Shown in pieces: positions 1 through 41,178 of a DNA stretch of 64,000 nucleotides (position 1 is its first letter; each line of letters starts with the position of its first letter). A program made the translations under genes and the position numbers. The stretch spans positions 62,001 through 126,000 of the forward strand of contig JALMLS010000213.1 in NCBI GenBank assembly GCA_038496445.1, read 5' to 3'. Origin of the DNA: Trichosphaerium sp. ATCC 40318. Its lineage: Eukaryota > Protista > Tubulinea. Below the pieces are notes generated by a model. That model saw nothing but the letters and a program-made list of their open reading frames with translations, made no database searches and was not told the origin of the DNA.

Positions 1-905
1 AATTTTCTTTTATTACTTTAACTCCAACTTCAGTGTCTGTCCAAAACACTGCTACTTCTTCATTGCCATCTTTATCTTTAATGTATTTATAGTGCTTGTA
101 ATGAGATTAGGTAACCGCCAAAGTTATTTGTCTCGTACCAAGCTACAAAGGTCAAAGTACTTCTCCATCGCAGCTCTACCAAACTCTGTCCTTAAAAATA
201 GTGTTGGATGTTTCGCATTACTGTTTATACCGCCAATAGAATAAGAATGTAAACCTTTCTTTGCCTGTTTTCGAGTTAGGAATGTAGTGAGTTCCATCAA
301 CGCACAAGAACAATAAGTTCATCTTGTAATCTTTCCCAGAGCTCTTGTACTTGCTCGAGAATATATGTTACAGCTGTAATTACTATTCTATTCGCTACAA
401 AGGATGTTAGTACCTAAAAGACCTTGAGACCACGTGTACGATAAAGCATTTTTATCTCTCTCCACGCAATAGGTACGCCATAATATTGTGCCGCATAATA
501 TAAATTGGAGGCATCTTTAACACCAGCTATGCTTTCTTTTTTCATTATACTCACGATTGTCGGAAGATGTTTTGAATGGCTACAATCGATATTTAAACTC
601 ATTACTAGCTAAAGTACACGGACCTGCATTCCTCTAAAAGCGTTGTTGATTCTGACGATGAATTATCTTGTAGTGATTCAAAATGTACTTTAGACGCGAA
701 AAGAGACGATGAATACGCGTCGAGAAGCTCTTCCGATAACGTAAAGCTAAAATCACCACATTTAAACTGTATTGAACTTTCTGTTGCTGTTTCTGTTGTT
801 TCAGTGGTCGTATTAAGTTTCCTCTTGTTGCGGTTCAGGTTCTTCCTTTGTTGCAACTTCTGGTGTTGAATTCAGTTTCCTCTTATTTTTGTGTGGTTCA
901 GACAT
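1..905 (-). pseudogene. NLS-BTB/POZ family copy A1, truncated by the window edge, with a frameshift near 825
   Basis: ATG at 905 (MSEPHKNKRKLN) runs into TAA. The BTB core IQFKCGDFSFTLSEELLDAYSSSLFASKVHFESLQDNS is in another frame (ORF 605..856). Later exons (AAQYYGVP, FLRTEFGRAAMEKYF, HYKYIKDKDGNEEVAVFWTD) splice as in the other copies. Confidence 0.75.
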
Positions 906-944
906 TGCGTGCAAGGTGTATAAAACGTTCTACACATTTTTTTA

Positions 945-992
945 TAGTGATTGATCAGTTGGCACTTGAAGTGCCGTGTACTCTGATCAGTG
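945..992 (-). promoter_or_regulatory. Imperfect palindromic element just upstream of the A1 start, an inverted homolog of the 1482-1720 repeats
   Basis: On the minus strand it reads TGATCAGAGTACACGGCACTTCAAGTGCCAACTGATCA, with a GGCAC/GTGCC inner stem and TGATCAG/CTGATCA outer arms. Confidence 0.4.
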
Positions 993-1481
993 AGATAATA
1001 GGTTAAATCCATTTTTTTAGTTGCGCCTATTAAGGAAAGGGTAGAGGATCTCGAGTAGTGATTGTAAGTACATGCAACATATTTGTACACAGAGATTTTA
1101 TTTTTATGGTTTTGCTTGAACTCTTGCAATCATTATTACGGGTGTGCACTGATCTTGGAGACATAAAAATCCCTCTTGGTACAATACAAACACTACCTTA
1201 ACTTAATACCGTCGATGCTTTTCAGGGATTGGTTACAGGAACGAGTATAGCTGAGGTAACCTTCTATTGGATGAATATGTCACCATTTCAGGCGTTTGAA
1301 TTCGTGAGACCGAAGCTCAACATTGATCTCAACAGAAGACGCATTAACACAATTAAACTATGGCTAATATCAACAACACCCACAAACCCCCTAACCAAAT
1401 TCAATCAAACTCAAACATGACTAAACCGCCAAACCTTGCTACCAGAGCAAGGTTGTGTCTAGTGATCAGTGTGCAATCATA

Positions 1482-1720
1482 GGGACACACTCCAGGGATA
1501 TTGGTCAGCAATCAAGTATTACGGCACCTCGAGTGCCAAGTGATTGAAAACTATGGTGGTAGAATATTAACACCCGTAACCACCCTTACCAAAAAACTCA
1601 TAGTAATCAAAGGGACACACTCAAGGGATAATGGTCAGCAATCAAAGTATTACGGCACCTCGAGTGCCAAGTGATTGAAAACTATGGTGGTAGAATAATA
1701 ACACCTGTATCCACCCCAAC
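1482..1720 (+). repeat. Two direct repeats of about 105 nt, about 130 nt apart, each containing a hairpin
   Basis: agggacacactc.agggata.tggtcagcaatcaa(a)gtattacggcacctcgagtgccaagtgattgaaaactatggtggtagaata occurs at ~1482 and ~1611. Confidence 0.9.
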
Positions 1721-2580
1721 CCCTTGAAAACTTCATTTTCTTTCCAAAACTTTTCTTCTCTTTTCCTTTTTTTTTTACCATTTATTTCTTTTTCTTGAAA
1801 AATTCACATCTTGTATGTAATGTAATTCGCACAAGTGCGCTGTAGTGTTTTATGTACAAATATACACGACATCAGTGCGCTATTGATAGCCACTAAGACG
1901 TTGTCTTTCCTCCCAAACAATCGCATATTAGTTGTCTAGCTGGCGCAACGGTTATTCTAGCGATTCAAAAATAGCTAAAGAGCTGATTTAGTAAATACAC
2001 AACATGAACCCACAACAAAAAAGGGTATGAAGAAATACACTCACGTGCTTAATATTGTCTTAGACTGCGCCTTCAAGAAGTTCCACCAGATTTATTTAAC
2101 AGGTCAGATTCTAGAACAAATATTTGCGCCTAGCGGCTTGCTTACCTTGGTAAGATTGTTTGCACTACAATCCTACTTTGTTTATTAGCCACCGTAAGTG
2201 ATAAAGCCAGACTTGCTTGGAGTAATTTTGTCCGGTGCAATGGGCGCGTATTGCTGAATATAAGAATAGAATTATTGCCCTATTCTTGCGTCAACCGGAC
2301 AAGATTATCACATAGCACATTGTGTACCTTTGTTGCCAGCACCTGAGCCGAGCCTTGACAGTGCAGATTTCTCTATTAACTAGCGTACACGTCTTACATA
2401 TGACTCCTTCCTCACTGCTCGATCAGATGCTCTCTGTTGTTCGTTATGGTAACATCTCACTTAAATAAACTTGCTATCCACTCCTCTGGCGACTAGTTTC
2501 TATTGCGCACAAAGTATGTAGGAAAACGTGACTACCCAAAAGTCAATTTTTTTCTTTCTGTAATGTAACGGTCCGCCACA

Positions 2581-4062
2581 ATGTCTGAGCCACATTTGAA
2601 GAAAAGGAAGCTGAATCCAAAAAATGACGCTCCAGGCATAGCAAAAGCAACACCAGAAACACCAATACAGTTTAAATGTGGTGATTTTAGTTTCACACTA
2701 CCGGAAGACGTTCTAAACGCTCACTCATCGTCATTATTCGCGTCTAAAGTACATTTTGAGTCACTACAAGATAATTCAGAAACAACAACGATCTTGGAGG
2801 AATGTAGGTACGTCAAACTTACATGGTTAATATTTTAAGCGTCTGATGTTGTAAACAACCAGCAACTCAAAATATCTTCCAATTATCGTGCGCTATATGA
2901 AAAAAGAAGAAATCACGAGCATTGAAGAAGCGCCCAAGTTATGGTATGCAGCAGAATACTATGGTATACCCATTGTATGGAAAGATATGAATATGCCTTT
3001 TAGCACGTGCTCATCTTGCTTCTTTTAAGTACTAACAACCACTTGTAGAGCGTTTATTACCTATTATGGCCGTAACAAACATCCTTGAAAAAGCACGAGA
3101 TTGTTGGAGCAGATTACAAACTGAACTAAAAGCTCACGTAAGTTTGTAGCATAAATGATGTACCTAACTAGCAGTTTACATTGTAGGCAGAAGCCGGGTT
3201 CAACTTATTTGTTGTTGGTGGTATTAAAAGAAACGCAAAGCATCCAACAAAATTTTTAAAGACAGAACTTGGCAGAACTGCAATAGAGAAGTATTTTAAA
3301 AGACACGATATGGTATGATGTCAAGTTGTTTCTATCAATGTCGTTAATCTCATATTCAAGCACTATAAATATACAAAAAATTTACGAGGTAAAGAAGAAT
3401 TGACCTTGTTTTGGACAGATGAAGAAGTTGGAATTGAGGTTTTTGCAGCGAAATGTGGTTTTGCGCTTGCTGGTCAATTTTGGGATTTTGCAAACCTGAG
3501 TAAGTAGACCCGGCTTAGTGTTTGTCTGAAAAATTGCTTGTAGCTGAGGAGTTATGGGCCAGATCTCAATGTAAAAGATGGAGTGATTTAACTAATAATA
3601 GAGCCACTTTAATACAAGCTTATTTCAGTGAGGCAGCAATAGGAGGTTTGGAATTCATCATTTTATATCATAATACAGGTACAAACTATCCGAAAGATGT
3701 ATTTTATGACCATAAAATTACCCTTGCGTACGTTATAATTAAAGACGGTTAATTTCTGAAAATACCATGTATTTTTAGGCCAGATCATGTTTGTTCTGTT
3801 AAGGCAGTAGCAAATGATGAAGTGTTGCGAATTAAACTTGGAAAAGTACTGTGTTCGTATCTTGAAGGGGCAGTACGTGTTTATTATCTGTAACATGGTA
3901 TAACAAGTTGCACAGACGTTTGTTGATAATGATGTTCACGACGAAAATAATGTGACCATCACACTATCCATTCCGGAATTGGATAAGAATTTGCTTGAAG
4001 AATTTTTACCAATATACCTCTCGCCCGCACAATCAACTCCTACTGCCAAAGGAGAAGAATAA
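2581..4062 (+). CDS. NLS-BTB/POZ family copy A2 (intact, 8 exons, ~380 aa)
   Basis: Spliced by eye from MSEPHLKKRKLNP to ...FLPIYLSPAQSTPTAKGEE*. Intron 1 is 2808-2862 and intron 2 has a GC donor at 3003. BTB pattern: N-terminal beta hairpin, SLF helix, AAEYYGI matching KCTD EAEFYGL. Confidence 0.85.
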
Positions 4063-4818
4063 AAAACTTGTTGAACACATGGCTACAACTAATTTACGAA
4101 ATACTAATAGTATTGCTGTTGTAATTTGAGGTACAAAAATTCTGTTGTAGTCATTAGTTTAAACTTTGTGAATATACATGTAATATAGTGCATTAGTGTT
4201 TATACCATTTTGGTATTCTGTTCTCAATCATGTGATGAGGTATAGTGGTAGAATAGCTTTGATACTTGCAGGGATTACAAACACGAGTTGCATGTACGCT
4301 AAGCCAGACGGTTTGTGAACATAGGAAGCCTTTTACAACTCTGCAAGCTATACTATTAGTGTATCCTTATGGAGTACTTTACGTGAGCATAAGTACAGAA
4401 AGTCACGTGCATACTACAAATCAGGAGTGGCCTTTTAAAAAGTTGGCTTTCGTTAAAAAAAAAAATAGCGCTATTTCAGTTGTGGAGTTAAGGTAATTGT
4501 AGGCCGAAATGAAGCAAACACTTGCAGCTAGTCGAATTTGCTGTCTTTTGGGCAAAAGTCGGGTATCAATTAGAGGTGACTAAACGCCTCTTATTTCCCT
4601 ATTTGTGCGTAGAAAAGGTATTTGCAAGGTAGTTTGCCGAGTTTTACCAGAACAGGAAGTAACTATTAAAAGTCTGTTCACGAACAGTGAATTATTTACT
4701 ACTGCATTATACAGCGCAGAACTCGCAAAAACATTGCTAAATTTGGTAAGTTATGAACGGCAAGCCCAGTCCGCTTAATAAAATTCAATCTGTCTTGTTC
4801 ACCACTGCTCTAATAACC

Positions 4819-6465: not shown

Positions 6466-6622
6466 ATGGATCTGGGCAACCGAGCTGTAGTGCTTTAACA
6501 CTCTTACCACGTCTTGTAAGCTTTAAAAACCAAAAATAAAACGACTACAGCCAGCAACAAACTTAACAGTCAACTTCGTTTCAAATTCAAAAAAGTAACC
6601 GGTAAAACAAACTAAGCTTTTT

Positions 6623-8120
6623 ATGTGTGAACCACAAAAAAAGAAAAGGAAGTTGAATCCAAAGACGGAAACAACAACTACAGCGAAAAACATATCAAGA
6701 CAGTTTAAATGTGGTGATTTTAGCTTTACACTATCGGAGGACCTTCTCAACGCGCATCCATCATCTCTTTTCGCGTCTAAAGTACATTTTGAATCACTAC
6801 AAGATAATTCAACAACAACAACGACTCTGGAGGAATGCAGGTGCGTATACACTATACATTATGTTTTAGCTAACAAAAGTAGGTACGAATAGCCTTTCTT
6901 GAATACAAGATCTTTAAACTGACTTTATCAACGAAAAGCCACTCAAAGTTTCTTCCAACAATCTTGAGTATTATGAAACAAGAAAAAATCCAGAGTGTTG
7001 AAGATGCAACCAATTTATTTTTAGCGGCCGAATACTATGGTGTACCCATTGATTGGAAAGAAATACCTATGGCCTATGGTACACTTTATTCCTTGCATTG
7101 CTTAAAATAACAACTATGTAGCACGGAAGCTACCAATTGTGATAGTTACATACCTCCTCGAACAAGTACAACATTTTTGGGAAAGCCTACAAAATGAGCT
7201 TGTGGCACCAGTATGTTGTTACATTTAAACGTCTAAACTTATTTTTTAACAGGCTGAGCATGGGTTAGGATCCTACTTTGTTGGTAGTGTAAAGAGTAAT
7301 GCAAAGTATCCTACACTCTATTTAAAGTCAGAGTTTGGCCGATCTGCAGTGGAAATGTACTTCACACGCTGTGACTTGGTAAGCACGTGGTTTTGTGGTA
7401 GCTAACATCAACAAGCATTTTAAATATGTCAATGATAAAGACGGTGTAGAACAATTGGCTTTGTTTTGGACAGATGCTGAAGTCGGACGTGAAGTGGTGG
7501 AGGGGAGATGTCTTGAAGCAGTTGCAGGTCAGTTCTGGAAGTTTGCTAACCTGAGTACGTTTGTATTTAGTACATCCATTACCTTGGTGCATAACTGAAG
7601 TACTTTTTTAGCTGAAGAATTATGGGCAAAATGTCAATATAAAAGATGGCACAGTTTATTTTGCGAAAGGTTACAAATCCGCAAGGCCTATGTACAAGAG
7701 GCAACGCTGGGATCATTAACATTTGTTTTTATGTATCATTCATCTAACGAAGATCCTCCAGCAGACGTTCAACATGATTATATCACTACTGTTCAGTATG
7801 TATACAGTTTTGTAGCTCCTTGTATTAATACCCAGCTAGACCAGGTACTGCAAGTTGTGTTAAGAAATTGATTGGTGATGCACTAATGAGGAGAAAGCTT
7901 ATTAGTCTATTGTGTTTGTTCCTAGAAGTAGCAGTACGTTGTTTACTTATTTCACTTTCCCTAACTATTTAAGACCTTTGTTGAAGAAACAATCTACAGT
8001 GACGACACTTTAACAATCACATTATCAATGCCAGAAATTAAGAAATCTGAACTTGAAAATTATATGCCACTGTACCTCACGCCATATAACCCAGAGCGTG
8101 ATCTCAAGAAACAGCTCTAA
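6623..8120 (+). CDS. NLS-BTB family copy A3 (intact)
   Basis: Runs from MCEPQKKKRKLNP to ...YMPLYLTPYNPERDLKKQL*, and all exons splice in frame. Confidence 0.85.
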
Positions 8121-8510: not shown

Positions 8511-8530
8511 GACAATGTAAGTACTTTAAA

Positions 8531-8886
8531 ACAGAACTAGCAAAAATTACACGATCCATTATATTAGATAGTACACAATGATACTACCAAAACTGTTGTA
8601 AACTGATATGATACGGACAAGCCAGTAGTACTGGTATTAAGTGTTGAACAACAACGAAAGATCCTCTCTTCTCATCGCACAAATGGAAAGCTGATTGACT
8701 AAATAAATGGTTCTCAACAAGTTGTATATTTTCCTACCTTACTTTAAAAGGACACATTTACAAATCGGAATGGTTGTATTCTAGAAACCTACATACACGC
8801 CGTTACGTGTATAATCTATTCAATATTCAGTGTTTTGCCTCTAACTGTGCTACTGTAGCTGTCTGAACTTTACGCTAAAACAACGT
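8531..8886 (+). repeat. Upstream region duplicated at ~14370-14794
   Basis: Long near-identical blocks (gaactagcaaaaattacacga ... tgtatattttcc.accttactttaaaaggacacatttacaaatcggaat ... tgtagctgtctgaactttt) precede both A4 and A6. Confidence 0.85.
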
Positions 8887-10405
8887 ATGTCTGAACCAAA
8901 AACAAAGAAGAGGAAGTTAAATCCAACTGAAACGAGTGAAAAAACAGAAATAACAACACTGGGAGCGAAAAGAACATCAATACAGTTTAAATGTGGTGAT
9001 TTTAGCTTTATGTTATCGGAAGAGCTTCTTAACGCACATTCATCATCTCTTTTCGCGTCTAAAGTACATTTTGAATCACTGCAAGATAATTCATTGTCAA
9101 CAACGACAACGCTTTTGGAGGAATGTAGGCGCGTATGACACTGCACTGGAATAGCATCTCACTAAATTACGACTATAGGTACAACGTATTAAACAAAAGG
9201 CATTAAAACTGACTTTTATGAACGAACAGTCATTCACAGTTTCTTCCAACAATCTTGAGTATTATGAAACAAGAAAAAATCCAAAGTATTGAAGATCCCA
9301 CCAATTTGTTTTTAGCGGCCGAATACTATGGTGTACCTATCGTTTGGAAAAACCTACCTATGGACTATGGTACACTTTACTCCTTGCATTGCTTCAAATG
9401 ACAACTACGTAGCACGGAAGCTACCAATTGTGATAGTTACATACATCCTCTCACAAGTAAAACATTTTTGGGAAAGCCTACAAAATGAGCTTGTTGCACC
9501 AGTATGTTGTTACATTTAAACGTTTAAACTAATTTTTTAACAGGCTGAGCATGGGTTAGGATCCTACTTTGTTGGTAGTGTAAAGAGTAATGCGAAATAT
9601 CCTTCACTCTATTTAAAGTCAGAGTTTGGCCGAGCTGCAGTGGAAATGTACTTCACACGCTGTGACTTGGTAAGCACGTGGTTTTGTGGTAGCTAACATC
9701 AACAAGCATTTTAAATATGTCAACGATAAAGACGGTGTAGAACAATTGGCTTTGTTTTGGACAGATGCTGAAGTAGGACTTGAAGTGGTAAAAAAGAGAA
9801 GTTGTGAAGCAGTGGCGGGTAAATTCTGGAAGTTTGCGAACTTTAGTGCGTTTAAGAAAAGCAATTAAAGCTCATTGTGTTCATGTGCACCTTTTTAGCT
9901 GAAGAACTATGGGCCAAATGTCAATACAAAAGATGGCACAGTTTATTTTGCGAAAGGTTACAAATCCGCAAAGCATATGTGAAAGAGGCAACACTAGGAT
10001 CATTAACATTTGTTTTTATGTATCAATCGGCTGATATAGATCCTCCTGCAGACGTTCGACATGACTATATCACTACTGTTCAGTATGAATACAAGTTTTG
10101 GAACTCCATGTATTTATTAATACCTTGTTGTAGGCCAGGCACCGTATGTTCTGTTAAGAACTTGATTGGCGATGCACTATTGAGGAGTAAGCTTAGAAGT
10201 CTATTGTGTATGTTCCTAGAAGTAGCAGTACGTTGTTTACTTATTTCACTTTTCCTAACCATTTAAGACGTTTGTTGAAGAAAAAGTCTACAGTGATGAC
10301 ACTTTAACAATCACATTATCGCCAGAAATTAAGAAATCTGAGCTTGAAAATTATATGCCACTGTACCTTACGCCATATAACTCAAAGCGGAATCCCAACA
10401 AATAG
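8887..10405 (+). CDS. NLS-BTB family copy A4 (intact, mosaic)
   Basis: GC donor at 9129. The exons 2-8 region is largely near-identical to A3, while the 5' end matches A6/A8. Ends ...YLTPYNSKRNPNK*. Confidence 0.85.
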
Positions 10406-10813: not shown

Positions 10814-12387
10814 CTATTTTTTGTTGCCTTTCTTCTTGTAGGTGAGCTTCTTTTTACCGCTTGTATTGCAGAACTTGTTTCGGTCCTGCCCTGATTGTTG
10901 GGCGTCAATGAAAGAATCCTGTTGGTTGTTTGTAATTTTTGGTAAGTTTATTTGAACTCTTAGCAATATTGAACATCCTTCATGGTCAGAAACAGGCTAT
11001 TGAATGTTAGTTTGATTTTACTATGTAATGAAAACATACGCTACCCAACTCAGCTTCAAAATGAGCGAATAATTTTTGTTTGTGCATGTTGCACTCAAGT
11101 TCCCCAACACAAAATACCGGGTGATCTCTAGCAGAGTGTGAGATAAACAATACATCTAAAGTACGTACACATAAAAAACAAAATCTGCTCCTTCTGGATG
11201 AGTCCACCAAGTGGTAACATACAAGAGAAAAAATGGCTTTCCAGCCTCTGCTACCTCAAAAAACTTTTTCTTCAAATCGTCTGTTTGTTCCAAAATATCA
11301 TACCACTGCGCATACACAGCTTCAGCCCATAATCCCTCTCCTATGACACAGTTATTATGATTGTTGATGCCTGCGTACCGAAGCTTTTAAACGAATCCCA
11401 CTCAAGCCCAAGAACATTCTCATAGTCCTTAAATAAATGAGCATTTGCCTGCAGAGTATGCTCATCCCAATACAATGTGAGGTTTATTGGATTTTCTTCA
11501 TTGTCAAGGTTTTCTACAATTTCAAGGTGCTAAATGTGATATATATCAGTACACGTTTTTTTTTTTGCGAAACTACGTACCATGCCGTAAGTAAATGACG
11601 CAAAATACCTTCTCATTTTGGCCAATCCCCTTGATGTTAACAATACGGGTACCAAATCTGGAAGCTTAAGCGTAAACGACATTCCGCCATTTTTTGCCTA
11701 TTTAAGTTATTAAATCTATCAATCAATCTACGTACGCGTCGAAGTACTTCAGCTTTTATTCTGTTCCACAATGCGCCTATCTCTGGTAACAAGGCATTTC
11801 CTACAAGTACGAAAGTTCGAAGATCTAAAAAACAATCCTCAGCAAAAAACAAGTTTAACTCGTTAACGGCGTTTTACTACTTACAGGCTGGCAAGCTACC
11901 GTCATCAAGATTAGCCTTCACACCATAGTATTGAAGAGCACGCATGACGTCACCCCCATTTTGAATGGGACCAAGCTCTTCACCTTTCAGTATTTTTACG
12001 ACGCTTTCAATCTCATTTCCGTAGCTATTTTGTTACTATGTTAGTACTTAGATTACAACAAAGAACAACGTACCTATCCAAAAGTATTATGTCACCGTAC
12101 TCATCAAGTACTTGCATGTCTGTATTAGCCACCAAAAGCGCAAACATCGAAAGGTTATGCCTTCGTAGTATTTCGTGCGACAATGAGAAACGAAAACTCT
12201 TGTGTACATGCACAAAACGTGTAAAACTCGCCACGATTCTAGCCTTTTCCATTTTCAAAGGTTCATTCGAATCAGTCATTATAGTATCATAACCCGCATC
12301 GTATAGGTTCCGTCTTGACATCGCAAGCGCTTTCTCATCATCATTCGGTTCATTGAGCTTTTGTTTCTTTCTAGGCGGTTCACTCAT
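10814..12387 (-). CDS. Divergent NLS-BTB family member D2
   Basis: MSEPPRKKQKLN; FRFSLSHEILRRHNLSMFA...DEYGDIILLD (KCTD-like DxxGxYFID position); RALQYYGV; AKNGGMSFTL; GEGLWAEAVYAQW. Intron positions and phases match the core copies. Confidence 0.75.
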
Positions 12388-12867: not shown

Positions 12868-14313
12868 ATGTGCGAACCTCTCAAAAAGAAAAGGAAACTG
12901 ACTCCAACAATGGAAACTACAGAAAAAACAGAAATGCCGGAAATACAATTTAAATGTGGTGATTTTAGCTTTGCGCTATCAAATGAGCTTCTAGACGCGT
13001 ATTCATCATCTCTTTTCGCGTCTAAAGTACATTTCGAATCATTACGAGATAATTCAGAAACAACAACTCTGTTGGAGGAATGTAGGTATGCAAATTACAC
13101 CACCACATCCCGCCTTGCGTCCACGCTAACTCTTGCACTTAACAGCCATTCAAAGCATCTTCCGGCTATTATTAATGTGATGAAAAAAGAAGAAATAACC
13201 AGCATCGAAGATCCTTCAGGTTTGTGGTTTGCAGCTGAGTACTATGGTGTACCGTTCACTTGGAGAAGTATAAAGATGCCATTTGGCACGTGCTCAAAGT
13301 GGCATTATCACTTCAACTTACGACATAGTAGAGAGCAAGCTGCCAATAGTAGTAATATCGCAAATGTTCGAACAAATACGAGTTTTTTGGGAAACCCTAC
13401 AACAAAAACTTATTGTTCCTGTAAGTTAAACGAATTTGCAATGTTTCTCAGAATTAATAGGCAGATGCTGGCTGTAATTCATACGCCATCGGTGGTATTA
13501 AGAATAATGCAAAACATCCAACTTTGTTCTTAAAGACAGAACTTGGTAGAGCTGCAATGGAAAAGTATTTTACACAAAGTGACTTGGTACGAAAATAGCA
13601 CGAATCACTAGTGAGCTGACTCTCACCAACAAGCACTATAAATATACAAAAGATAAGCATGGCAAAGATGAAATGACAGTACTATGGACAGATAATGAAG
13701 TTGGGCACAAAGTCATCGAGGAAAGATGTTCTGCAGCTTGTGAAGGACAAAAATGGGATTACGCTAGCTTGAGTGCGTTTTTACTTTACAAACGTTCCAT
13801 ATACACTTTGTGATATACTGTTTAGCTGAAGAGTTATGGGCCAGATCTCAGTACAAAAGATGGAACAATTTGTGCAAAATGAGGAGAACTATGGCTGATA
13901 CCTTTCTAGCAGAAGCATATTTAGGAGCAATTGAATTTGTAATTTTATATCATTCATCTGGCATTGAACGTCCATCAGACATACACCACAACTACATGAT
14001 AAACCCTGCGTATGTTTATAATGCAACTGATTTTTAACATATAGTTTAGAACGGACGCTATTTGCTCTGCTAAGGCTGTGGGGAGCGATAAAATGATGCG
14101 ACAAAAGCTAGCTGGTTTGTTAATTTCATTTCTTAAAGGAGCAGTACGGGTTTTGTATACTTCATAATTCGTTAACCTACCGTACAGAATTATGTTAAAG
14201 CAAAGATCTACAATGAGAACACGTTAACTATGACATTTTCTATTCCTCAACCAGACGTTAAGAGGCTTGATGATTTTTTACCAATATACTTGACCCCATA
14301 CAAGCCAAAATAG
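12868..14313 (+). CDS. NLS-BTB family copy A5 (intact)
   Basis: Runs from MCEPLKKKRKLTP to FLPIYLTPYKPK*. Intron 2 has a GC donor. Confidence 0.85.
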
Positions 14314-14794: not shown

Positions 14795-16291
14795 ATGTCT
14801 GACCAAAAAAAAAGAAGAGGAAGTTAAATCCAACTGAAACGAATGAAACAACAGAAACAACACTGGGAGCGAAAAGAACTGGAATACAATTTAAATGTGG
14901 TGATTTTAGCTTTACACTATCAAAAGACCTTATCAACGCACATTCATCATCTCTTTTCGCGTCTAAAGTGCATGTCGAATCATTACAAGATAATTCATCA
15001 TCAACAACGATTTTGGAGGAATGTAGGCACGTATCACACTGTTCAACGTATCGAAATCTTTCATAATAGAATCATACGCTGATTATCAACGCACAGCCAC
15101 TCAAAGTCTCTTCCAACAATCCTGAGTTTGATGCGAAATGAAGAGATTGCGTGTATTAAAGACGCCTCCAATTTATGGTTTGCTGGAGAGTACTATGGCG
15201 TGCCCATTAAGTGGGAAGAAATTAATATGCCATTAGGCACGTGATGTCCAACGCCTGTTGGTTGGAATTGGCTCGCTTCAAGTCCTAGTATCTGTTGTTA
15301 TTTACAACTTCATAGGACCCAAGTTGGCAGTGGCTACTGTTGTAGCCATTTTAGACCGCATACGAACGTTTTGGGAATCCATGCAAGCTTCTCTAAAACA
15401 AAGAGTACAAAACAACCTTCAATAGCATATCAGCTCACTTGTTGCCAGGCGATGCGTGGTTACATCTCACATAGTGTTTGTAAACTAGATGAAGAACCAC
15501 ACTTAAACACACGGCTGGGCAGAGCTGCATTGGCAAAGTACTTTAAACAATGTAATATGGTAAGGCTGATAACACCAATTAACACTCACCTTAACAAGCA
15601 CCATAAATACACTAAAGACGAAGATGGCACTGACGAGCTGACAGTGTTTTGGACAGACATTGAGGTTGGACCTGAAGTGGTGAGGAACAAATGTGTTGAA
15701 GCAATTACTGGTAGATTTTGGAAGTTTGCCAACTTCAGTACGTCGCTTTCGTAAATGTACACTTTGTGATGTATTGATTAGCTGAAGAGTTATGGTGCAG
15801 ATCGCAATATACACGATGGAAGAACTTGTATAACCGTAGAGGACGTATGCAACTTACCTATGCCCAAAGAGCAAAAACTGGCGCAGAAAAATTTGTTATT
15901 GTGTATTGCTCAAAGCAGGCAGTACTGGAAGATGTATATAATGATTTTATTGTACACCCTCAGTATACCGACACTATTTGACAGTTTTCTATCCAAATTA
16001 ACTTGCTTGTGTTCTGGGCTCAGACGACATTTGTTCAGTTAAAGAAGTTGCAAATAGTCTCCAAATACAGAAAAAACTGTGCAGCCTGCTAAGCATTGTA
16101 TTGGAACTTTCCGTATGTTTCCTTGCTACTCATTGTCATTAATGATTTATTATTAGACTTTACTTGAATATAAAGTATACAAAGATGTTGCTTACATAGT
16201 CACGTTGTCAATTCCAAAAATTGACGATTCTTTAATTGATGAATTTTTACCAATCTTTATGTCTCCATATGATCAAGACAAGATACCTTGA
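14795..16291 (+). pseudogene. NLS-BTB family copy A6 (disabled)
   Basis: One nucleotide is missing just after the ATG compared with A4, giving an early TAA. The exon 7 acceptor reads ...ctggg|ctcagac where A8 has ...ggtag|ctcagac. Confidence 0.75.
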
Positions 16292-17169: not shown

Positions 17170-18671
17170 TCAATCAAAAGATACTGGTCGGTTGCGATCA
17201 TAAGGAGTGAGAAAGATTGGTAAAAAATGATCAAGTACAGACTCATCTATTTTTGGAATTGACATTGTGACGGTGTAATTGTCATTGTCATGTACTTTAT
17301 CTTCAATGACAGTCTAATAGCAAATCAATAATCAATTAACGTTGTAAGTACAGTCAAAGAAAAACAACAACGTACAGAAAGTTCCAAGAATATACATAAT
17401 AGCTTGTGAAACTTTTGCTTCATTTGGACATTGTTTACCATCTCGTTAACAGCAGTCACTGGCGAACTAAAAAAGATATTGTAAATAAATTTCAACAACA
17501 ATGTTGCGGGTATACATAGGAGATAACATTAAATCGTTATAAACATCTGTTGGAGCATCCACATCAGTACAATACAGAATAACAAATTTTTCCGCTCCAG
17601 TTTTTGCTCTTTTGCGGAAGGCACGTTGCAAAACTACTCTTCGGTTATACAAGTTCTTCCACCGCACATATTGTGATCTGCACCACAAATCTTCAGCTAA
17701 ACAGTACATCACAAACCGACATATGATTATTAATACGCACTGAAGTTGTCAAACTTCCAAAATTTGGAACCAAGCAAATCAAGAAATTTCGCCTTTATTA
17801 TATCAGGTCCAACCTCATCGTCTGTCCAAAATACTGTCACCTCAGCCATTCCATCTTCATCCTTTGTGTATTTGTGGTGCTTGTTGAGGTGTTAGTGTTG
17901 ATAGACAATGAAAATATCATACCAGGTTACATTGTTTAAAGTACTTTGCCAATGCAGCTCTGCCCAACCGTGTATTTAAAAATGGGGCATCTGATTGTTT
18001 GCAAACTATATCTGAGGTATAACCACTAATAGCCTTAAACATGTTAATAGGTTTGGAATTTGTTGGTAACGAAAATGACTTGTACTCTTTTTTTAAGTGA
18101 AGTTTGTAGAGAGTCCCAAAAAGTTCGTATCTGTTCGAAAATAGCTACGACAGTAACAATTACCAACTTGGGTGCTACGTAGATGTAAACAAATAAATAA
18201 GTCAAAGTGTTGAAGTCACGTGCCTGAAGGCATTTTTATCTCTTCCCAAACAATGGGTACGCCATAGTATTCGGCTGCAAACCATAAGTTGGAAGCATCT
18301 TCGATATTGGCGATACTTTTTTTCTTCATTATGCTGATGATTGTTGGAAGAAACTGTGAATGACTATTTGCGGTAAGATTTAAGTTGTTCATTATGCAGT
18401 TATGATAGGATCACGACACGTACCTACATTCCTCCAAAATCGTTGTTGATGATGAATTATCTTGTAGTGATTCGAAATGTACTTTAGACGCGAAAAGAGA
18501 TGATGGATACGCGTTGAGAAGGTCCTCTGATAGTGTAAAGCTAAAATCACCACATTTAAATTGTATTCCAGTGTTTTTTTCTGCCGTTGTAGGTTTAGCC
18601 TCCGGATTCAATTTCCGTTTCTTTCTGAGTGCTTCAGTCTTTGCGTTCAGCTTCCTCTTTTGGTCAGACAT
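17170..18671 (-). CDS. NLS-BTB family copy A7 (intact)
   Basis: Runs from MSDQKRKLNAKTEALRKKRKLNP to FLPIFLTPYDRNRPVSFD*, and all exons splice in frame. Confidence 0.85.
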
Positions 18672-19312
18672 AACGTAAGTCTACTAGTTCAGAAAAGAGT
18701 TGACTTAACACGTTCACAGTAGTACACAAATACTTTGTTTGTTAATTAGAATCTGAGTATTTGAAACTTGCAGGCGAATATGCACCTGCAAAGTACACGC
18801 AGTTGTAACCTTGTCACAAACAATTGAAGTACTTTTGAAAAGGTTAACAACAGCTTGTCAAGTACATTTTGATACATATCTCAAACTGTTCCTTTGACCC
18901 ACTTCAACTTGAGAATATTCGGATGAGAGGTACATTTGTTTGACACATGATCTTCTTTGATTTGTGAAAAGAGTTCAGGTATGCTTTACGCGGGCGTAGA
19001 CAAAGACTGTGGCAACTTTGTTTTTGTTGTAAAAACAGGTTGAGCGTATTCATACATCGACAATTCCGCGACTGTTTTTTGATCTTATTAACGTCTACTT
19101 TTTATTATTTAGTATTACTAAATAGAGTAACGTCAGAATATAACTGGAACCATTCCAAAAACACCACGCATAAGCGACAGTTATTGTGTAAGAACCGACT
19201 ATGAGTTTCTATGCGTTTCAGGCTGCAAGCAAAGCGATAAGTGTTGAAAAACTGAATTTTCTGTATAAGTCAGCGCTTGAAGAAACTAAACGTACAAATA
19301 CATACGCTTTCA

Positions 19313-20886
19313 ATGTCTACACCACAAAAGAAGAGGAAAATGAGTCCAACTACAGAAATTGTAGCAAACGAAACTGATGAACCACAAAAAAAGAAGAGGA
19401 AGTTGAATCCAACTGAAACGAGTGAAAAAACAGAAATAACAACACTGGGAGCGAAAAGAACTGGAATACAATTTAAATGTGGTGATTTTAGCTTTGCACT
19501 ATCAGAAGAGCTTCTCAATGCCCATTCATCATCTCTTTTCGCGTCTAAAGTACATTTTGAATCACTACAAGATAATTCATCATCAACAATGGTTTTGGAG
19601 GAATGCAGGTACGTCTCGTAACGTCCTTGCAATGTAACGGAATAAACTAACTTTATAAACGAACAGCCATTCAAAGCAACTTCCAAAAATCTTGAGTTTG
19701 ATGAGAAAAGAAAAAATAACAAGTTTTGAAGATCCTGCTGGTTTCTGGTTTGCAGCAGAATACTACGGCATACCCATTGTTTGGAAAGATGTACCTCAGC
19801 CCTTAGGCACGTAATTGGCATCCAACTCTGCGAAACTAGCCGACTAGCATCCACAATAATCATTTACTTCTCTTGTTTATACCTCCATAGGACATATGGT
19901 GGTAAGTCTCACTGTTGTATCCATTTTTGAACAAATACGAACACTTTGGGAATCGATACAAGGTTTGTTGAGAAATAGAGTAAGAGCGAACACCTTGGAG
20001 CTAATTCATTAACTTGTAATTAGGCAATGCGTGGGTTCATCTCACACAGCATTTGCAAACAGTCAGAAGCACCGTATTTAACTACACGTTTGGGTAGATC
20101 TGCATTGGCAAAGTACTTTAAACAAATTGACATGGTATTATTATAACGTATGTCATTGCTGCTAACAACCATGTAAACAGCACTATAAATACACAAAAGA
20201 TGAAAACGGTGTGGAAGAGGTGACAGTGTTCTGGACAGATGATGAGGTAGGACCTAAAGTTTTAAATGCGAAATGTCTGGAGGCAATTACTGGTAGATTT
20301 TGGAAGTTTGCCAACTTCAGTACGTCCTGCTTTGTTTGACAAATGTACACGTTTTAATCTGCTGTTTAGCTGAAGAGCTGTGGTGTAGGTCACAATATAC
20401 ACGATGGAAAGACTTGTACAAACGCAAAATACCTATACGACAAGCCTATCTACGAAAGGCAAAAATAGGAGCGGAGAAATTTGTTGTCATGTTTTGTTCA
20501 AAGAAGGCAGTTCTACCAAATGTTTACAATGATTTTGTAATACACCCTTAGTATGTCTACGCTTATTAGCAATGTTTTTCATACTAATGTGTGGTAGCTC
20601 AGACGAGGTTTGTTCAGTTAAAGAAGTTGCAAGTAGTTTTCAACTACAGAAAAAGCTTTGTAGTCTATTGTGTACATTCTTGGAACTTTCAGTATGTTTG
20701 TTTTGTTTTATTGTTCCTTTTGATACACTTTCATTAAAGATTTGTTGCTAGAAATTAATTGACGATACAGTACACGAAGATAGTGCATACCTTATCACAT
20801 TATCAATTCCTAAAATTGACGATTCTGTACTAGATGGTTATTTACCAATCTTTGTCTCTCCATACGATCAAAACAACATACCTTGA
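19313..20886 (+). CDS. NLS-BTB family copy A8 (intact)
   Basis: Runs from MSTPQKKRKMSP..EPQKKKRKLNP to YLPIFVSPYDQNNIP*. Head-to-head with A7. Confidence 0.85.
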
Positions 20887-21019: not shown

Positions 21020-21680
21020 TTTATTTGAAATCAAACATATATAGAACTGGATTGACGTAAACGGCCTTGGGTGTATCACGACTGTTTTGTTTAATTGTTT
21101 TTATACCAACGTTTGGGTGCTGGCTCAATTTCATTGTGAACACTGGCTCTTTTCCCTTGTTGGTAATTTCCAACCATATTGTACGTTTGTTCGTCAGTTA
21201 TAGAAGTAGGAGGCAATTGGAAAGTTATCCAATAGTACTTTCCTGGTTCAAGACGCTCTTGAAAAGACACAATCTTTAAGAGTGTTAGTTGTTTAAGGAT
21301 TCATCTACGCACATGTTTTATTTGCGACCTAAAAAAGTTGCTTAGCAGTCCACTGTGCATATGCTGTTCAACCCAAAATGGTTCGTCTCTATGCAAACAA
21401 TGAGATTGGATAGTATTAAATGCACGTACACGTCTATGGTCACATTTTGCGCTAAGTCAGGTACATCAGCAAGAGTCGTAGCAGATTTGGAATACAATAT
21501 AGTAAATCCAAGCGTTTTTTCTCCAGATAATACTTGCGACATGTATGCGTCGTTTCATCTTTACTAGTTTCTACTACTCCAGCTTCAAAAACTACCCCTT
21601 TATCTGTCCCACCGGCCTGAAAAGCCTCTTCTCCATCATATGAGTGACCAAGGACGTTTGGCAAAGCGGGTTGAGCCATG
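21020..21680 (-). pseudogene. Possible highly decayed or remote family member (C-terminal exons only)
   Basis: DGEEAFQAGGTDKGVVFEA resembles exon 5 (DGxEELTxFWTDxEVG). DAYMSQVLSGEKTLGFTILY resembles exon 6 (AYxxEAxxGxxxFxILY). The frames are not contiguous. Confidence 0.35.
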
Positions 21681-22805
21681 CTTTGTTCAAATGGGAAACA
21701 AAAAAATATGTTGTAAAACGGCGTATCAACGGTAGTAAACTGAATGGTACTTCGACGAGTGAGATGTGTAACGTACGTAAGAGACCACTGAGTTGTTGGT
21801 TTACTGGAAAAATTTCCAAAAACAAACGTCGCAACATTTCAATCTCGTTTACGAGTACGCAACCTCAAAGTGAAACAAGTTGGCGACTTGATATTTAATA
21901 TTCAGCCAAATATGGAAAAATTTTCGCTTTACTACTTAGCTGTATACAAAAACTCGGTTAGCAACTGAAAGCTTCTCGCGCTAGAAAAAAGTTATCGCCC
22001 AATGAAGAACTCCGAATAGTAATTCACAAATTTACCTAATCGAAATATTACTACTAATGCGTGTCTTTAAAGCTCCTAGTATTAGAAAAAGTAAGAAGCA
22101 CGTTTTAGTATTTCGCAATTGTTATCATATTCTGCCCTTACTAAAAAAAGGCAATTTTGTGTATTTCGGCAGTTTTTTTGCAAAGCGCTTTTGAATCACA
22201 ACGAGAATGCTACAGTGTCTTCGGAATTGACCCAAGTTCACCGTAAACGTTTTTACAAGTCTGTTTTGTACAACAAAAATTTCATTAAGATTGACATTGG
22301 TTTTTTGCTACGCCTCACCTAACTTAAAAAAAACACGACATAAACATCAACTCTAGAGTCACGTGATTGTGCAAGTTGTTAAGATAAATGAGAACACTAT
22401 TTCTTACCAAAGATGTCATTCTTATTGCTTTTGCGACGTCATCAAACAGTTGTACAAATCTATTAAATTATATTAGATTGGACAACGTTGTCAATATAAG
22501 GGAGACGCGCTTGGGAGGAAAGACGCTCAGTCTTTGGTGGCTCTAGCGTAGCCACACGAGCGGATTTATTCTACATTTAAGAACACTCGTGTGAATTGCA
22601 AATGTGTTTGAAGGAAAAATAAAGAAATAATTTTTACAAGAAAAAGAAAAGGATTTTAGGGAGGGTGAGGGGATGTTTTGATTGCTACTCGCCATTGTTG
22701 TTGTTGTTGCCTATTGTGTCCTTCGATATTGACAGTCTTGTTCAGTCCAACCAAACGCTTGAAATGTTCCACATCTTCATTCATAATCATACCTCCACAG
22801 CGAAG

Positions 22806-23003
22806 TTTTTTCTGAATTATCTTGTAGTGATTCAAAATGCACTTTAGACGCGAAAAGAGATGATGAATACGCGTTTAGAAGGTCCTCTGATAGTGTAAAG
22901 CTAAAATCACTACATGTTGATGGTGTTTTTGCAGTCTCAGCCTTTGAATTAAATTTCCTTCTCTTTTCAAGATCGTTTTTAGTCTTGACTATTTTTTTGT
23001 GGT
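22806..23003 (-). pseudogene. Solo exon-1 (NLS/BTB core) fragment
   Basis: Near-perfect copy of the BTB core (gtgattttagctttacactatcagaggaccttctaaacgcgtattcatcatctcttttcgcgtctaaagtgcattttgaatcactacaagataattcag) with no recognisable exon 2 following. Confidence 0.8.
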
Positions 23004-23540
23004 TAATACTGTACTAAAAGGTATTTTTGGTGTATCTAGTTCGGTAAGTGATTTTCTAGCCTTATTTATTCTTCAAGCTGGTTTTACTACTCGAACAGTA
23101 TTTGATTGTCGGATTTAAGATATGTTTGCATTTAAGCACAACATTGTAGCTACATTACAAAATTACTAGTATTGCGCACACTTAAAACAAAACGAAGTTC
23201 TATATTTATTATACTTTGTAAATATTTATAGTTTCACTTTACGAGCACAACTGCAAGCCACTAGCTAGTGTGATTCCGTGATAGTGCAGTATTCCATAAC
23301 ACGCTTAGATGCTGGCTCAACCGAGTCCATAATATCCACACCTTTTTGGTGCTTTTCAGCTTTCAGCTTAAAGGCCTGGTAAATACTACCCAATAGAATT
23401 CATTTTCTTTATAGTCCTCATCACTTTCCGCATCCTTGACAGCTTAAGTCATTGAGTGCATTAGTGTACGTACAGTTTTCATTAGATCAGTGAAGAAAAA
23501 GCGCAAGTAATCTTGTTCATTCCAGATTGAACAATGTGCC

Positions 23541-23730
23541 TCATACGTATGCAGTACAATATTGTGTGCCATAAATGGTGCCATCAGCAAGGTTCATCAG
23601 ATCCGCAGGCAAAATAGTTATTCCAATGGTTTCTTGCACGCAAAATGCTTCTGGTGAGTACTCACTGAGAAAAGTACGTTTGAGATCCTGCCAATGAGCA
23701 TACATGGTTGTCGCCCAAATTCTATCACCT
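23541..23730 (-). pseudogene. Relic of a divergent-subfamily exon 6
   Basis: GDRIWATTMYAHWQDL matches D1 GERLWATAVYAQW and D2 GEGLWAEAVYAQW. Confidence 0.5.
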
Positions 23731-23926
23731 TCAACACGTGTCTTTAACATGGCACCACCACTTTAAGTACTCTATAAGGACACAATAAAGGATATTGAGT
23801 TGCACAAGGCTGCCAACGTTCACAAGCCATTTCAAAGAACTAGGCTTAGCGCTAACATAAAATAGCGTTTTTGGCGTGCCGATGGCGATTTAGTTGTTGC
23901 TGATAGTACAGACAAATTGATGTTTA

Positions 23927-25135
23927 TTAGATTGCATTATCTGCTTTACGGGTTTGATCATATGGAGTTAGATATATTGGTAAAAAATCATCAACCACAG
24001 AATCATCAATCTTTGGAATTGATAACGTGATGATGTAATTATCATTGTCATGTACTTCATCTTCAATGAAAGTCTAGTGCAAAATCATTAATTACGTTGG
24101 ACAACAAACCAATTAAACATACTGAAAGTTCCAAGAAAGCGCCCAATAGACTACAAAGTTTTTTCTGTACTTGCGTACTCTTTGTAACAGTTCCAACACA
24201 GCAAATATCATCTGCACTATGGTACACATGTTAGGTTTTATAAAACAATCCTAAAGGCATACCTGGCTTCAATAATAAAATCATGGTAAACTTCTGGTGG
24301 AGGTGACAACCTTGTGTGATACAGAACGACAAATTTTTCTGAGCCAGTTCTTGCTCGTTCAACATATGCTGTTTGCATTGGGAATATACTTTTGTACAAG
24401 TCATTCCATTGTTTATATTGTGACCTTGCCCATAATTCTTCGGCTACAAGCATATCAGAAAGACTACATTTTGTACTGAGAAATCTCGAGTTGACAAACA
24501 AACAGATACGCACTGAAGTTGTCAAACTTCCAAAATAGACCTTCAATTGCATCAAGACATCTCGCTTTCACAATTTCAGGTCCAATCTCGTCATCTGTCC
24601 ACAATATTGTCAGCTCATCCTCACCATTCTCATCCTTTGTGTATTTATGATGCTTGTTGAGGAGTAGTTAGTGTCAGTGAAACTTGCTTACACATCATAC
24701 CAAGCTGCAGTGTTTAAAATACTTTGCCAGTGAATTTCTACCCAAACGGGTGTTTAAATATTCTTCATTGCCTTTGAGATTAATACTAGCTGAATCGCAA
24801 CCAAGAATCGCCTAATACCAATTGAGGAAACAAGCTAAATTTGACCGAAGCGCACTCTTTTGTTTACAAATACACTGGGCTGGTACGTACCTACACTCCT
24901 CTAGAAGCGTTGTTGTTTCTGAATTATCTTGCAATGATTCGAAATGCACTTTAGACGCGAAAAGAGATGATGAATGTGCGTTGAGAAGGTCCTCCGATAG
25001 TGTAAAGCTAAAAGCACCACATTTGAAATGTATTGGTTTTTTTGCTGCTTCAGCCTTTGGATTCAACTTCCTCCTCTTTTCATGATCGTTTTTAGTGTTT
25101 GTATTGAGTTTCCTCTTTTTTTTAGGTTCAGACAT
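23927..25135 (-). pseudogene. NLS-BTB family copy A9 with exons 2-3 deleted
   Basis: Exon 1 ends in phase 2 and is followed within about 80 nt by exon 4 in phase 0. Exons 4-8 are present. Confidence 0.75.
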
Positions 25136-25510
25136 AACAACAGCTGGTCACGTCCTTCAAGTTCAAGGGCTGTATTGTGTTGTGTACTATACTTTACTAC
25201 TGTCCCTACCGGTTACTTTTGAAGGTAGGATTTGACATGAAATACCGCTATTTCATTTTCAAGTTAAGCTACTTTACTGCACGGCCCAACCTTGATTTGT
25301 AGCACACGTGCCTGAAAGATGGTACCAACACGTTTAAGTGTACCATAAGGATACAATAACGGATAGCTTGTAGAGTTGCACAAGGCTGGGCTACTTACAT
25401 TCGCAAACCATTTCAAAGAACTAGGCTTAGTATAACATAAAATAGCGTTTTTCGGGATGCCTACGGCAATCGTAGTTGTTGATATACAAACAAATTGACA
25501 TTTATGGTTA

Positions 25511-26967
25511 TTATACTTTACGATTTCGATCATAGGGAGTTAGGTAAATTGGTAAAAAATTATCAACCACAGAATCATCAATTTTTGGAATCGATAACGT
25601 GATGGTATAATTGTGTAAATCGTGTACTTCATCTTCAATGAAAGTCTATTTGTAAATCATTAATGATGTTTGAACAACCAATTAAACATACTGAAAGTTC
25701 CAAGAAAGCATTCAACAGACTACAAAGTTGTTTCCTCATACGGACACTTTGCACAACAGCTCTAACAGAACAAATATCGTTTACGCTGACCACATGTTAG
25801 GTTTGATAACTTCTGAAAGCTCCAGACTTACCCAGCTTCAATAATAAAATCATGGTAAACTTCTGGTGGGGTTGACAACCTTGCGTGATACAGAACAACA
25901 AATTTTTCAGCGCCAGTTGTTGCTTGTTCAATGTAGGCACCTTGTATTGGTGCTATACTTTTGTACAAATCTTTCCATCGTGTATATTGTGACCTGGCCC
26001 ACAACTCTTCCGCTAAACACATATCACAAAGTGTCCATTAGCAATCTAGGATTGACACGCACTGAAGTTGTCAAACTTCCAAAATAGACCTTCAATTGCA
26101 TCAAGACATCTCGCTTTCACAATGTCAGGTTCGATCTCGTCATCTGTCCACAATATTGTCAGCTCATCAGCACCATTCTTATCCTTTGTGTATTTATGAT
26201 GCTTGTTAAGGAGTAGTTAGTGTCAGTGAAACTCGCTTGCACATACCAAGCTGCAGTGTTTAAAATACTTTGCCATTGATGTTCTACCCAAACGTGTATT
26301 TAAAAAGGCATCATCCTTGCGCGTGATAGAAATACTTTCTGACTCGGCACCAAGAATTGCCTAATTTCTATTGAGTTACCACTAAATTCCAACTCTTACT
26401 GCTTTTTTAAGTGAAGTTTGTAGGTATTCCCAAAAGTCTCGTAGCCGTGTGAGGATGGTGACAACAGTAACAATTTCCAATTTAGGTGCTGTACAGTCGT
26501 AAACAATAAAAAATTGTGCAAGCACGTGCCTAAAGGCATATTCAATTGTTGCCAAACAATGGAAACACCATAGTATTCTGCTGCAAACCATAAATTAGAA
26601 GCGTCTTCGATACTTGTTATTTATTCTTTTCTCATCAAACTCAAGATTGTTGGAAGGAACTTTGAGTGGCTAACGATGTATTTCAGCACGTTAAGTATTA
26701 CAATAGCGTTGGTACGCGTACCTACACTCCTCTAGAAGCGTTGTTGTTTCTGAATTATCTTGCAATGATTCGAAATGTACTTTAGACGCGAAAAGAGATG
26801 ATGAGTGCGCGTTTAGAATGGCCTCGGATAGTGTAAAGCTAAAATCACCACATTTGAACTGTATTGATGGTTTTTTTGCTATCTCAGCCTTTGGGTTCAA
26901 TTTCCTCTTCTTTTTATGCATGTTAGCTTTTGTATTCAGTTTCCTCTTCTTTTTTTTTGTCAGACAT
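25511..26967 (-). pseudogene. NLS-BTB family copy A10 (disabled), tandem partner of A9
   Basis: An A9 run after the ATG shifts the frame (a second ATG lies at 26921). Exon 2 has an in-frame TAA (ATG AGA AAA GAA TAA). The 3' flank is shared with A9. Confidence 0.75.
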
Positions 26968-27150
26968 AGCGATAGCTGTTACGTTCAAGTTCACTATTCG
27001 TTAGCCATTTTATTCGTCAAAATTAAAAGATATTCATTCGACATTCTTGATTACACAAACAAGGGCGTAAGGAATCAAATAAAGTAAGGTCAGAAAATTG
27101 CCAAAACGAACACTTTAAGCCTAATTTTGGCTAAGAGTAAGTAGCAACAT

Positions 27151-28083
27151 ATGTGAACCTGCAACTCCAAAAGCATCAGTACAACGTTCAACACAGTTTA
27201 AATGTGGTGATTTTAGCTTAACACTATCAGTACATTCTCAACGCGTATTCATCATCTCGTTTCGCGTCTAAAGTACATTTCGAATCACTACAAGATAATT
27301 CTGAAAAAAAAACAAGGATACAATACAAGGTAAGTACTTGAAGTACGTACAAAAGAACGGAAGCTTGTTGGAACACTGTATTTGTAGGCGAGGTGGTGGT
27401 GAAAACACCAAAATTATAAGTGCAGCAACAGGCTCAGTTGGATTGGCATAGTACCTAAAACAATATTTGGTTTGCTGTATTGCGCTTACTTTCCTTCACC
27501 AAGCATTTTAAGTATCAAAATCAACTTGGGATAAACGGTGGCGCTGAAGTTGTAGCTGCAGATGCAGTTTTAGGAAAAAAATGGGATCGAGTATCTTTAC
27601 AATAGCAATGTTTCTGATGTACCTTATAGCGGAAGAGATGGGCTAATAGCAAAACAGAAATGGAGCCATTTACACAGGAAAGAGATAGACTGTTCAGCTT
27701 TCCTTTCATGCGGCAAAAGGAAAACTCTTATGTATTTGAAGTATATCGCGACTGGTCATGCGATACATAAAGTACGTACTCACTTAGGTACACCTCGAGT
27801 CGAAACAGCAACGAGTAGCTATAATCCGCTCTTATTAAAGCAAATGTTTACAAAGACGAACACAAGAGTAAAAAGCTGTTTAGCCTATTTAATTATGGGT
27901 TTCTGGAAACAGTAAGGAAAAATGTTTTTATACATTCTTCAGACTTACATGGTACTACACAGACGTTAATTGCTGAATGAGAATGCCATTACTAATTAGA
28001 ATATTGATGATTCTATGTTTGACAAGTTCTTGCCGATCTATCTCACGCCATACGAACGAGATCGAGTGTCAAGGAGGTTCTAA
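27151..28083 (+). pseudogene. Heavily decayed NLS-BTB copy A11 with a well-preserved BTB core
   Basis: The core at ~27195-27303 is close to consensus. Only remnants of later exons survive (caag|CATTTTAAGTAT; GCGGAAGAG; FLPIYLTPYERDRVSRRF*). Confidence 0.75.

Positions 28084-38245: not shown

Positions 38246-41178
<2,933 letters not shown>

Follow-up and report, generated by a model that had tools for sequence, protein, structure and literature searches.

What does a gene array on a contig from an amoebozoan genome encode, and is it a repertoire of receptors that diversify against foreign proteins? The array occupies the left part of a 64,000-nt stretch of Trichosphaerium sp. ATCC 40318 DNA (GenBank assembly GCA_038496445.1, contig JALMLS010000213.1, positions 62,001 to 126,000 of the forward strand), referred to below as the window. 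A first-pass annotation had read it as an expanded set of nuclear BTB/POZ proteins with a constant N-terminus and a variable C-terminus. We find that the array is a lineage-restricted multigene family shaped by local tandem and inverted duplication with decay, that is, by birth and death. All its exons are under purifying selection, and the 5' end of the gene has been exchanged between copies. The function of the products is far less certain, and a nuclear oligomeric adaptor or scaffold family is the explanation that we come to favor below.

A gene unit of ~1.5 kb recurs on both strands across positions 1-28,083 of the window, as a six-frame all-versus-all comparison of stop-free pieces, a MAFFT genomic alignment, exon projection and a repeat finder all agree. 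This region holds ten copies of a core type (J, A, B, C, D, E, F, G, H and I), three of a divergent L-type (L2, L and the relic L3) and two core relics, close to the 13 copies plus relics in both orientations over 28 kb that had been counted before. From left to right the order is J(-), A(+), L2(+), B(+), C(+), L(-), D(+), E(+), F(-), G(+), relic(-), L3 relic(-), H(-), I(-) and relic(+). Four unrelated genes, encoding a globin, a cullin, an oxysterol-binding protein (OSBP) and CPSF3, separate these from an eleventh core copy, K(+), at 41.3-42.8 kb. Since copy J is cut by the start of the window, the array extends further left. Complete spliced open reading frames (ORFs) of 371-417 aa, with all splice sites kept, are found in eight copies (A, B, C, D, F, G, K and L). 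E, H, I, J and, probably, L2 are defective; together with the three relics this bears out the earlier view of a lineage-specific birth-and-death tandem family. It is conceivable that the cluster is instead mostly non-functional and decaying, or in part an assembly artefact, given the broken copies and relics and the unusual frequency of GC splice donors (8 of ~75 introns). We consider this very improbable, since in eight copies the ORF and all splice sites have stayed intact through a synonymous divergence (dS) above 1, and the ratio of nonsynonymous to synonymous divergence (dN/dS, omega) is well below 1 in all exons (~0.3 under the one-ratio model M0). Moreover, the copies differ from one another at 9-49% of nucleotides and thus are not assembly duplicates, which rules out a collapsed or duplicated assembly. 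A transposon or viral origin was considered and rejected: the five intergenic or relic ORFs of the array that were tested contain no transposable-element domain, no relatives turned up in IMG/VR and each copy carries seven spliceosomal introns.

The family comprises two or more deep types, the core and the L-type among them. By their C-terminal part, the core copies divide further into subfamily 1 (A, B, C, D, J and K) and subfamily 2 (E, F, G, H and I), which differ by a five-residue indel in exon 4. L, L2 and L3 represent a much older type, ~25% identical to the core, in which the exon phases are unchanged and the hydrophobic pattern matches that of the core. In subfamily 1, the truncated copy J (1-856, -) retains exons 1-4 and part of exon 5, and its exon 1 is frameshifted in the N-terminal tail. 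Intact ORFs are found in A (2581-4062, +; eight exons, 381 aa, GC donor at intron 2), in B (6623-8120, +; 378 aa, introns all GT-AG), in the mosaic copy C (8887-10405, +; 383 aa, GC donor at intron 1), in D (12868-14313, +; 371 aa), whose 60-nt intron 1 is in frame and stop-free, and in K (41320-42799, +; 382 aa). In subfamily 2, copy F (17170-18671, -; 380 aa) is intact only if its exon 7 (17466-17376), which follows a proper TTTTTTAG acceptor, is taken to lack one codon relative to the other copies, and G (19313-20886, +) encodes an intact protein of ~394 aa in which the N-terminal basic motif is duplicated. Its remaining members are damaged: E (14795-16291, +) is a pseudogene whose frame shifts by 1 nt in an A9 run just behind the ATG and whose intron 6 acceptor has gone from AG to GG, H (23927-25135, -) is a pseudogene that has lost exons 2 and 3, and I (25500-26966, -) has a nonsense codon in exon 2 and a first ATG put out of frame by an A-run, with an in-frame ATG downstream at 26921. 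Among the L-type copies, L (10814-12387, -) has eight exons with phases as in the core, an intact 417-aa ORF and introns that are all GT-AG and 38-60 nt long, L2 (4819-6430, +) consists of pieces resembling exons 1-6 and exon 8, with exon 1 split between frames, and the relic L3 (23544-23762, -) is an exon 6-like piece. The core relics are an exon 1 at 22659-23013 (-) and a decayed copy at 27125-28080 (+), of which exon 1 pieces (27125-27338) and an exon 8 piece (28000-28080) are left.

The eight-exon layout proposed at first pass was recovered in all copies, with identical phases in every copy once the hand-set exon borders of copy B were projected on the genomic alignment. Exons 1 to 8 typically measure 218-248, 140, 89, 111-126, 139, 181-193, 91-94 and ~147 nt, and the introns, of 37-101 nt, end in GT-AG or GC-AG. 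The GC-AG share is ~10 times the usual one. GC donors are used by intron 2 of A, D, E, F, G and I (e.g. at 3003-3008) and by intron 1 of C (9129) and E (15027), and read GCACGT or GCGCGT where paralogs have GTACGT. The intact copies A, D, F and G thus rely on a GC-AG intron 2. Alternative GT donors for this intron in A, E and F proved on hand inspection to break the frame, and the GC-AG model was therefore kept.

Is the N-terminus of these proteins as constant as it had seemed, and why? Core copies open with an acidic-basic tail bearing the K-K-R-K-L-N(P) motif, reminiscent of that of simian virus 40 (SV40), which the first-pass annotation had singled out as a nuclear localization signal and which is present in every core copy: all have KKRK or KRRK followed by L-N, and the motif is doubled in F, G, H, I and J. 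It conforms to a monopartite signal (a K-K/R-x-K/R core in an exposed segment), the tail being of low model confidence in copy D, and it probably serves nuclear import of the family proteins. The exon-1 core that follows comprises 47-49 residues, of which 25 columns are invariant, at 77-89% aa identity. Conservation declines to 54-65% in exon 2 and to 34-59% in exons 5 and 6 when the recent pair B/C is excluded. The gradient described earlier, from an almost invariant N-terminal domain to widely differing C-termini, is therefore real but less stark than had been stated, as the C-terminal region, with W, G and F positions that never vary, is not hypervariable. In many copies the strand opposite exon 1 is also open, for 80-197 codons (e.g. 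6523-6852, 8850-9146 and 19270-19863, all -), and these antisense ORFs cluster by similarity; they probably just reflect the conservation of exon 1 and its paucity of stop codons.

Constraint is not the sole reason for the constancy of exon 1. While the exon-1 core is indeed strongly constrained (omega 0.18), its dS is also low, at 0.57 versus 1.1-1.5 in exons 4-8, and the repeat finder aligned seven plus-strand copies, including one relic, over an 85-nt stretch of exon 1 at 85-91% identity. The mosaic copy C is most telling. Its exons 2-8 are B-like (90-91% nucleotide identity), and over exons 3-8 it is 91% identical to B but only 58% to G and 56% to E, whereas its exon 1 is 82% identical to B, 89% to G and 87% to E. 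A tree of exons 3-8 rejects a clade of C, E and G (p-AU 1.8e-53 in the approximately unbiased, AU, test), whereas the exon-1 tree joins C with E and G (support 79/98), although, for the short exon-1 alignment, the AU test in the opposite direction falls short of significance (p = 0.15). Upstream, ~370 bp of C match E, and the homology between B and C begins exactly at the ATG; apart from this C/E homology, no promoter motif common to the copies was found. Exon 1, along with upstream DNA in at least copy C, has thus been exchanged between non-sister copies, and 5' gene conversion or unequal exchange accounts in part for exon-1 constancy, alongside purifying selection. In having an exon 1, with or without promoter, of lower synonymous divergence and conflicting tree, the array resembles other families homogenised by partial gene conversion, with the qualification that the tract has been mapped here in copy C alone and that the exon-1 AU test has the p value given above.

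If the array were a diversifying repertoire, as had been proposed, selection on the C-terminus should betray it. The first-pass annotation had suggested per-domain dN/dS and codon site models as a check, which we ran as Nei-Gojobori estimates (NG86) per exon, pooled over pairs of intact copies, and as models M1a and M2a (GY94, F3x4) on a GTR+G tree that fixed the relative branch lengths. No exon reaches a dN/dS of 1: the ratio is 0.18 in the exon-1 core, 0.38 in exon 2, 0.62 in exon 3 and 0.31-0.46 in exons 4-8, and the recent pairs B/C and H/I have C-terminal values of 0.27 and 0.41. For the C-termini of seven intact copies, M1a places 68% of codons at omega 0.23 and 32% at omega 1, and M2a brings no improvement (twice the log-likelihood difference, 2dlnL, = 0); the same holds for subfamily 1 (70% at omega 0.19, 30% at omega 1; 2dlnL = 0). 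For the N-terminus of the intact copies the fractions are 65% at omega 0.09 and 35% at omega 1 (2dlnL = 1.4, p = 0.5). M2a is preferred in the C-terminus of subfamily 2 (66% at omega 0.175, 34% at omega 1; 2dlnL = 10.1, p = 0.006), but this signal comes from one codon beside the exon-4 indel, at a nonsensical omega of 246, in a set of five sequences that includes three pseudogenes. Sliding windows with omega above 1 are confined to the disordered linker that precedes the exon-1 core and to one short exon-6 loop (1.34). All exons are thus under purifying selection, with about two-thirds of codons at omega ~0.1-0.2 and about one-third neutral, and no robust positive selection is found by site models of the C- or N-terminal regions, so that the term diversifying finds no support here.

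The C-terminal ~260 residues, encoded by exons 3-8, had been called unrecognised, and they are still without a detectable relative. No Pfam family matches the family exons or the in-frame read-through stretches of E (exons 4-5) and C (exons 6-7), and profiles of exons 5 and 6 find nothing in the PDB. Against 1.84 billion representative proteins the exon-6 profile gave three weak matches, all to repeat proteins (PT repeat, Big_1 and DUF3287; hhalign probability 35%), which we dismissed as spurious. Scans with back-translated patterns likewise returned no relatives, for the exon-1 core in metagenome, viral (IMG/VR) and prokaryotic genome contigs and for exon 5 in metagenome contigs. Judged from these sequence searches, the family appears to be an orphan at the sensitivity afforded by single exons of 46-60 residues.

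What could such proteins do? We favor a scenario, of about even probability as a whole, in which the array encodes a nuclear oligomeric adaptor or scaffold family under birth and death. The products, of ~380-417 aa, would be imported into the nucleus through their N-terminal PKKKRKL-like motif, would self-associate through a strand-strand-helix module encoded by exons 1-2 that looks like the T1/KCTD-type BTB fold, and might bind a partner through the conserved helix-and-strand C-terminal region, the paralogs being putatively sub-specialised; evidence for a fast-diversifying receptor repertoire is not seen. The assignment of the N-terminus to the BTB fold is plausible, if unverified, and we hold it to be somewhat better than an even bet on the basis of motif resemblance and of the order of modelled secondary structure. 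To the eye, hydrophobic and small residues in exons 1-2 are spaced in a way that resembles BTB/T1. The putative domain is split by intron 1, and copy D provides the only in-frame stretch across it (12868-13285, exon 1-intron 1-exon 2), in which 20 residues are intron-encoded. AlphaFold models this stretch with strands at residues 26-30 and 33-37 and helices at 39-57, 94-105 and 116-125, with a predicted local distance difference test (pLDDT) score of 84-93 in exon 2; the third strand expected of a BTB domain is disordered, beside the 20 intron-encoded residues. The succession strand-strand-helix, then helix, helix is that expected of a T1/BTB domain. As in KCTD/T1 proteins (BTB_2, PF02214), an N-terminal module of ~95 aa begins with strand-strand-helix and goes on to a "...L..A.YYG."-like helix, and a family-specific C-terminal domain follows within a total of 230-420 aa. 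The present proteins differ in that they have K-C-G-D in place of the glycine-rich turn of T1, an NLS-like N-terminal tail and a C-terminus without relatives, and match neither PF02214, PF00651 nor a solved KCTD/T1 chain significantly.

Several observations weigh against this scenario. Pfam scans, which covered single exons and in-frame read-through stretches, detected neither BTB (PF00651) nor BTB_2 (PF02214) at E<=1 with hmmscan in any exon of B, in exons of L or in the copy D stretch. A profile of the N-terminal alignment found no BTB, KCTD or T1 chain among 177,635 PDB sequences at E<=10, the sole match being radixin (E 0.55), and nothing at E<=10 in a set of 5.8 billion proteins, in which a search with the 221-aa ORF of copy D was likewise negative. 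The copy D model is weak overall (pLDDT 69.6; predicted template modelling score, pTM, 0.39) and includes the intron-encoded residues, and its alignment rows each span one half of the domain, with no co-variation linking the halves. Foldseek with this model gave no significant match in the PDB (best E 2.7) or BFVD (best E 0.1); the BTB entries 4yy8_A, 6guv and 8p2p are among the 57 weak PDB matches at ranks 7, 32 and 35, all insignificant, and offer no more than a hint. The AlphaFold model of exons 6-7 of C is likewise of low confidence (pLDDT 60.6). As for decay, E (14795-14815) and I (~26945-26966) both carry their 1-nt frameshift inside the A9 run right after the start codon, which could be a genuine mutation or a homopolymer error of the assembly, and other defects could be polymorphisms. 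As for selection, the power of the tests is limited by synonymous saturation (dS 1.1-1.5, and above 1 between subfamilies) and by simplified models with fixed relative branch lengths. The BTB/POZ identity asserted at first pass went undetected in the profile and fold searches, and what is left of it is a motif-level resemblance together with a secondary-structure order that is compatible with the fold.

It is possible that the family is nuclear but unrelated to BTB, the N-terminus being another small fold or a DNA- or chromatin-binding element and the whole 380 aa forming one lineage-specific unit such as a transcriptional or chromatin regulator. The silence of the Pfam, PDB-profile and 5.8-billion-protein searches speaks for this alternative, as do the lack of any Foldseek match with E below 0.1 and of an exon-6 relative among the 1.84e9 representative proteins, and both the constrained exon-1 core (omega 0.18) and the basic N-terminus would fit a nuclear role. 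It does not explain why the residue spacing in exons 1-2 and the predicted strand-strand-helix...helix...helix order match the BTB/T1 pattern, or why 4yy8_A, 6guv and 8p2p turn up among the Foldseek matches, for what that hint is worth. We regard a family unrelated to BTB as rather unlikely, though it deserves to be taken seriously.

The reading put forward at first pass goes further than the adaptor scenario in proposing nuclear CUL3 substrate receptors, whose BTB domain docks the cullin while the C-terminus diversifies against viral, transposon or symbiont proteins. Such a design has precedents, as MATH-BTB (BATH) and F-box proteins of nematodes and grasses are substrate adaptors of cullin-RING ligases (CRLs) and are encoded in lineage-specific tandem clusters with many pseudogenes (PMC4091423, PMC6883508, PMC12951971). 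Like those arrays, the present one occupies both strands, undergoes birth and death with pseudogenes and combines a better-conserved "docking" end with a faster remainder: dN in exons 3-8 is 3-5 times that of the exon-1 core. The exon-6 loop window and the preference for M2a in subfamily 2 could also be taken in its favor. However, MATH-BTB and F-box families possess a Pfam-recognisable BTB, MATH or F-box domain and documented positive selection in the substrate-binding domain, whereas here no domain is recognised and no robust sign of such selection emerges from the site models. BTB went undetected in every sequence and fold test run, no positive selection is seen in intact C-termini or in subfamily 1, the subfamily 2 signal is the single indel-adjacent codon described above, and the C-terminal omega of B/C and H/I is well short of 1. 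Unlike in those arrays, N-terminal constancy is here partly due to gene conversion, since the low divergence of exon 1 includes synonymous sites. Finally, the sole cullin seen nearby is CUL4-like rather than CUL3. We therefore judge a repertoire of CUL3 receptors to be distinctly improbable, and recruitment of cullin-3 and a surveillance or defence role are purely conjectural. A further variant is that the family represents an undescribed class of nuclear BTB-type adaptors, in which the C-terminus is a new partner-recognition fold, conversion keeps the docking end uniform and the paralogs partition nuclear targets among themselves, possibly including foreign or selfish ones; this, too, we think unlikely.

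The window as a whole has ~37% G+C and compact gene spacing, and other genes lie to the right of the array. Exons of a CBM_6 gene (28587-29351, +; E 1.2e-6) lie directly after the last array relic, followed by a single-exon globin gene (30676-31128, -; 150 aa, Pfam Globin E 1e-11). The nearest relatives of this globin among the 5.8 billion proteins are 49% and 40% identical and come from Logan assemblies only, which indicates that the source organism is poorly sampled. The cullin gene, ~4 kb from the array, spans 31997-33866 (-) and probably reaches ~35.1 kb, and among solved structures it is closest to CUL4A and CUL4B rather than to CUL3. Further to the right are ordinary housekeeping genes, for the oxysterol-binding protein (36325-37787, +) and for a homologue of CPSF3/CPSF73 (38919-39771, -) that scores 215 bits to the human protein and 113 to yeast Ysh1, a comparison that puts the organism closer to human than to yeast, and, beyond copy K, the C-terminal end of a protein kinase (45527-45829, -), a 160-aa ORF without a Pfam match at E<=1 (51347-51829, -) and a MORN-repeat protein (63501-63812, +). 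Scans of the window for tRNAs and Rfam families gave no matches.

As it stands, the array is one of many lineage-specific orphan clusters in poorly sampled eukaryotes, and it does not constitute evidence for a new surveillance system. It is of value for annotation, as its GC-AG and tiny introns are of a kind that gene callers may miss. Should the N-terminus prove to be a BTB domain, the family would represent a new BTB architecture, with a C-terminal domain that has no relatives in very large protein collections, and would also provide a clean example of how one end of a gene can be homogenised by conversion while the rest diverges.

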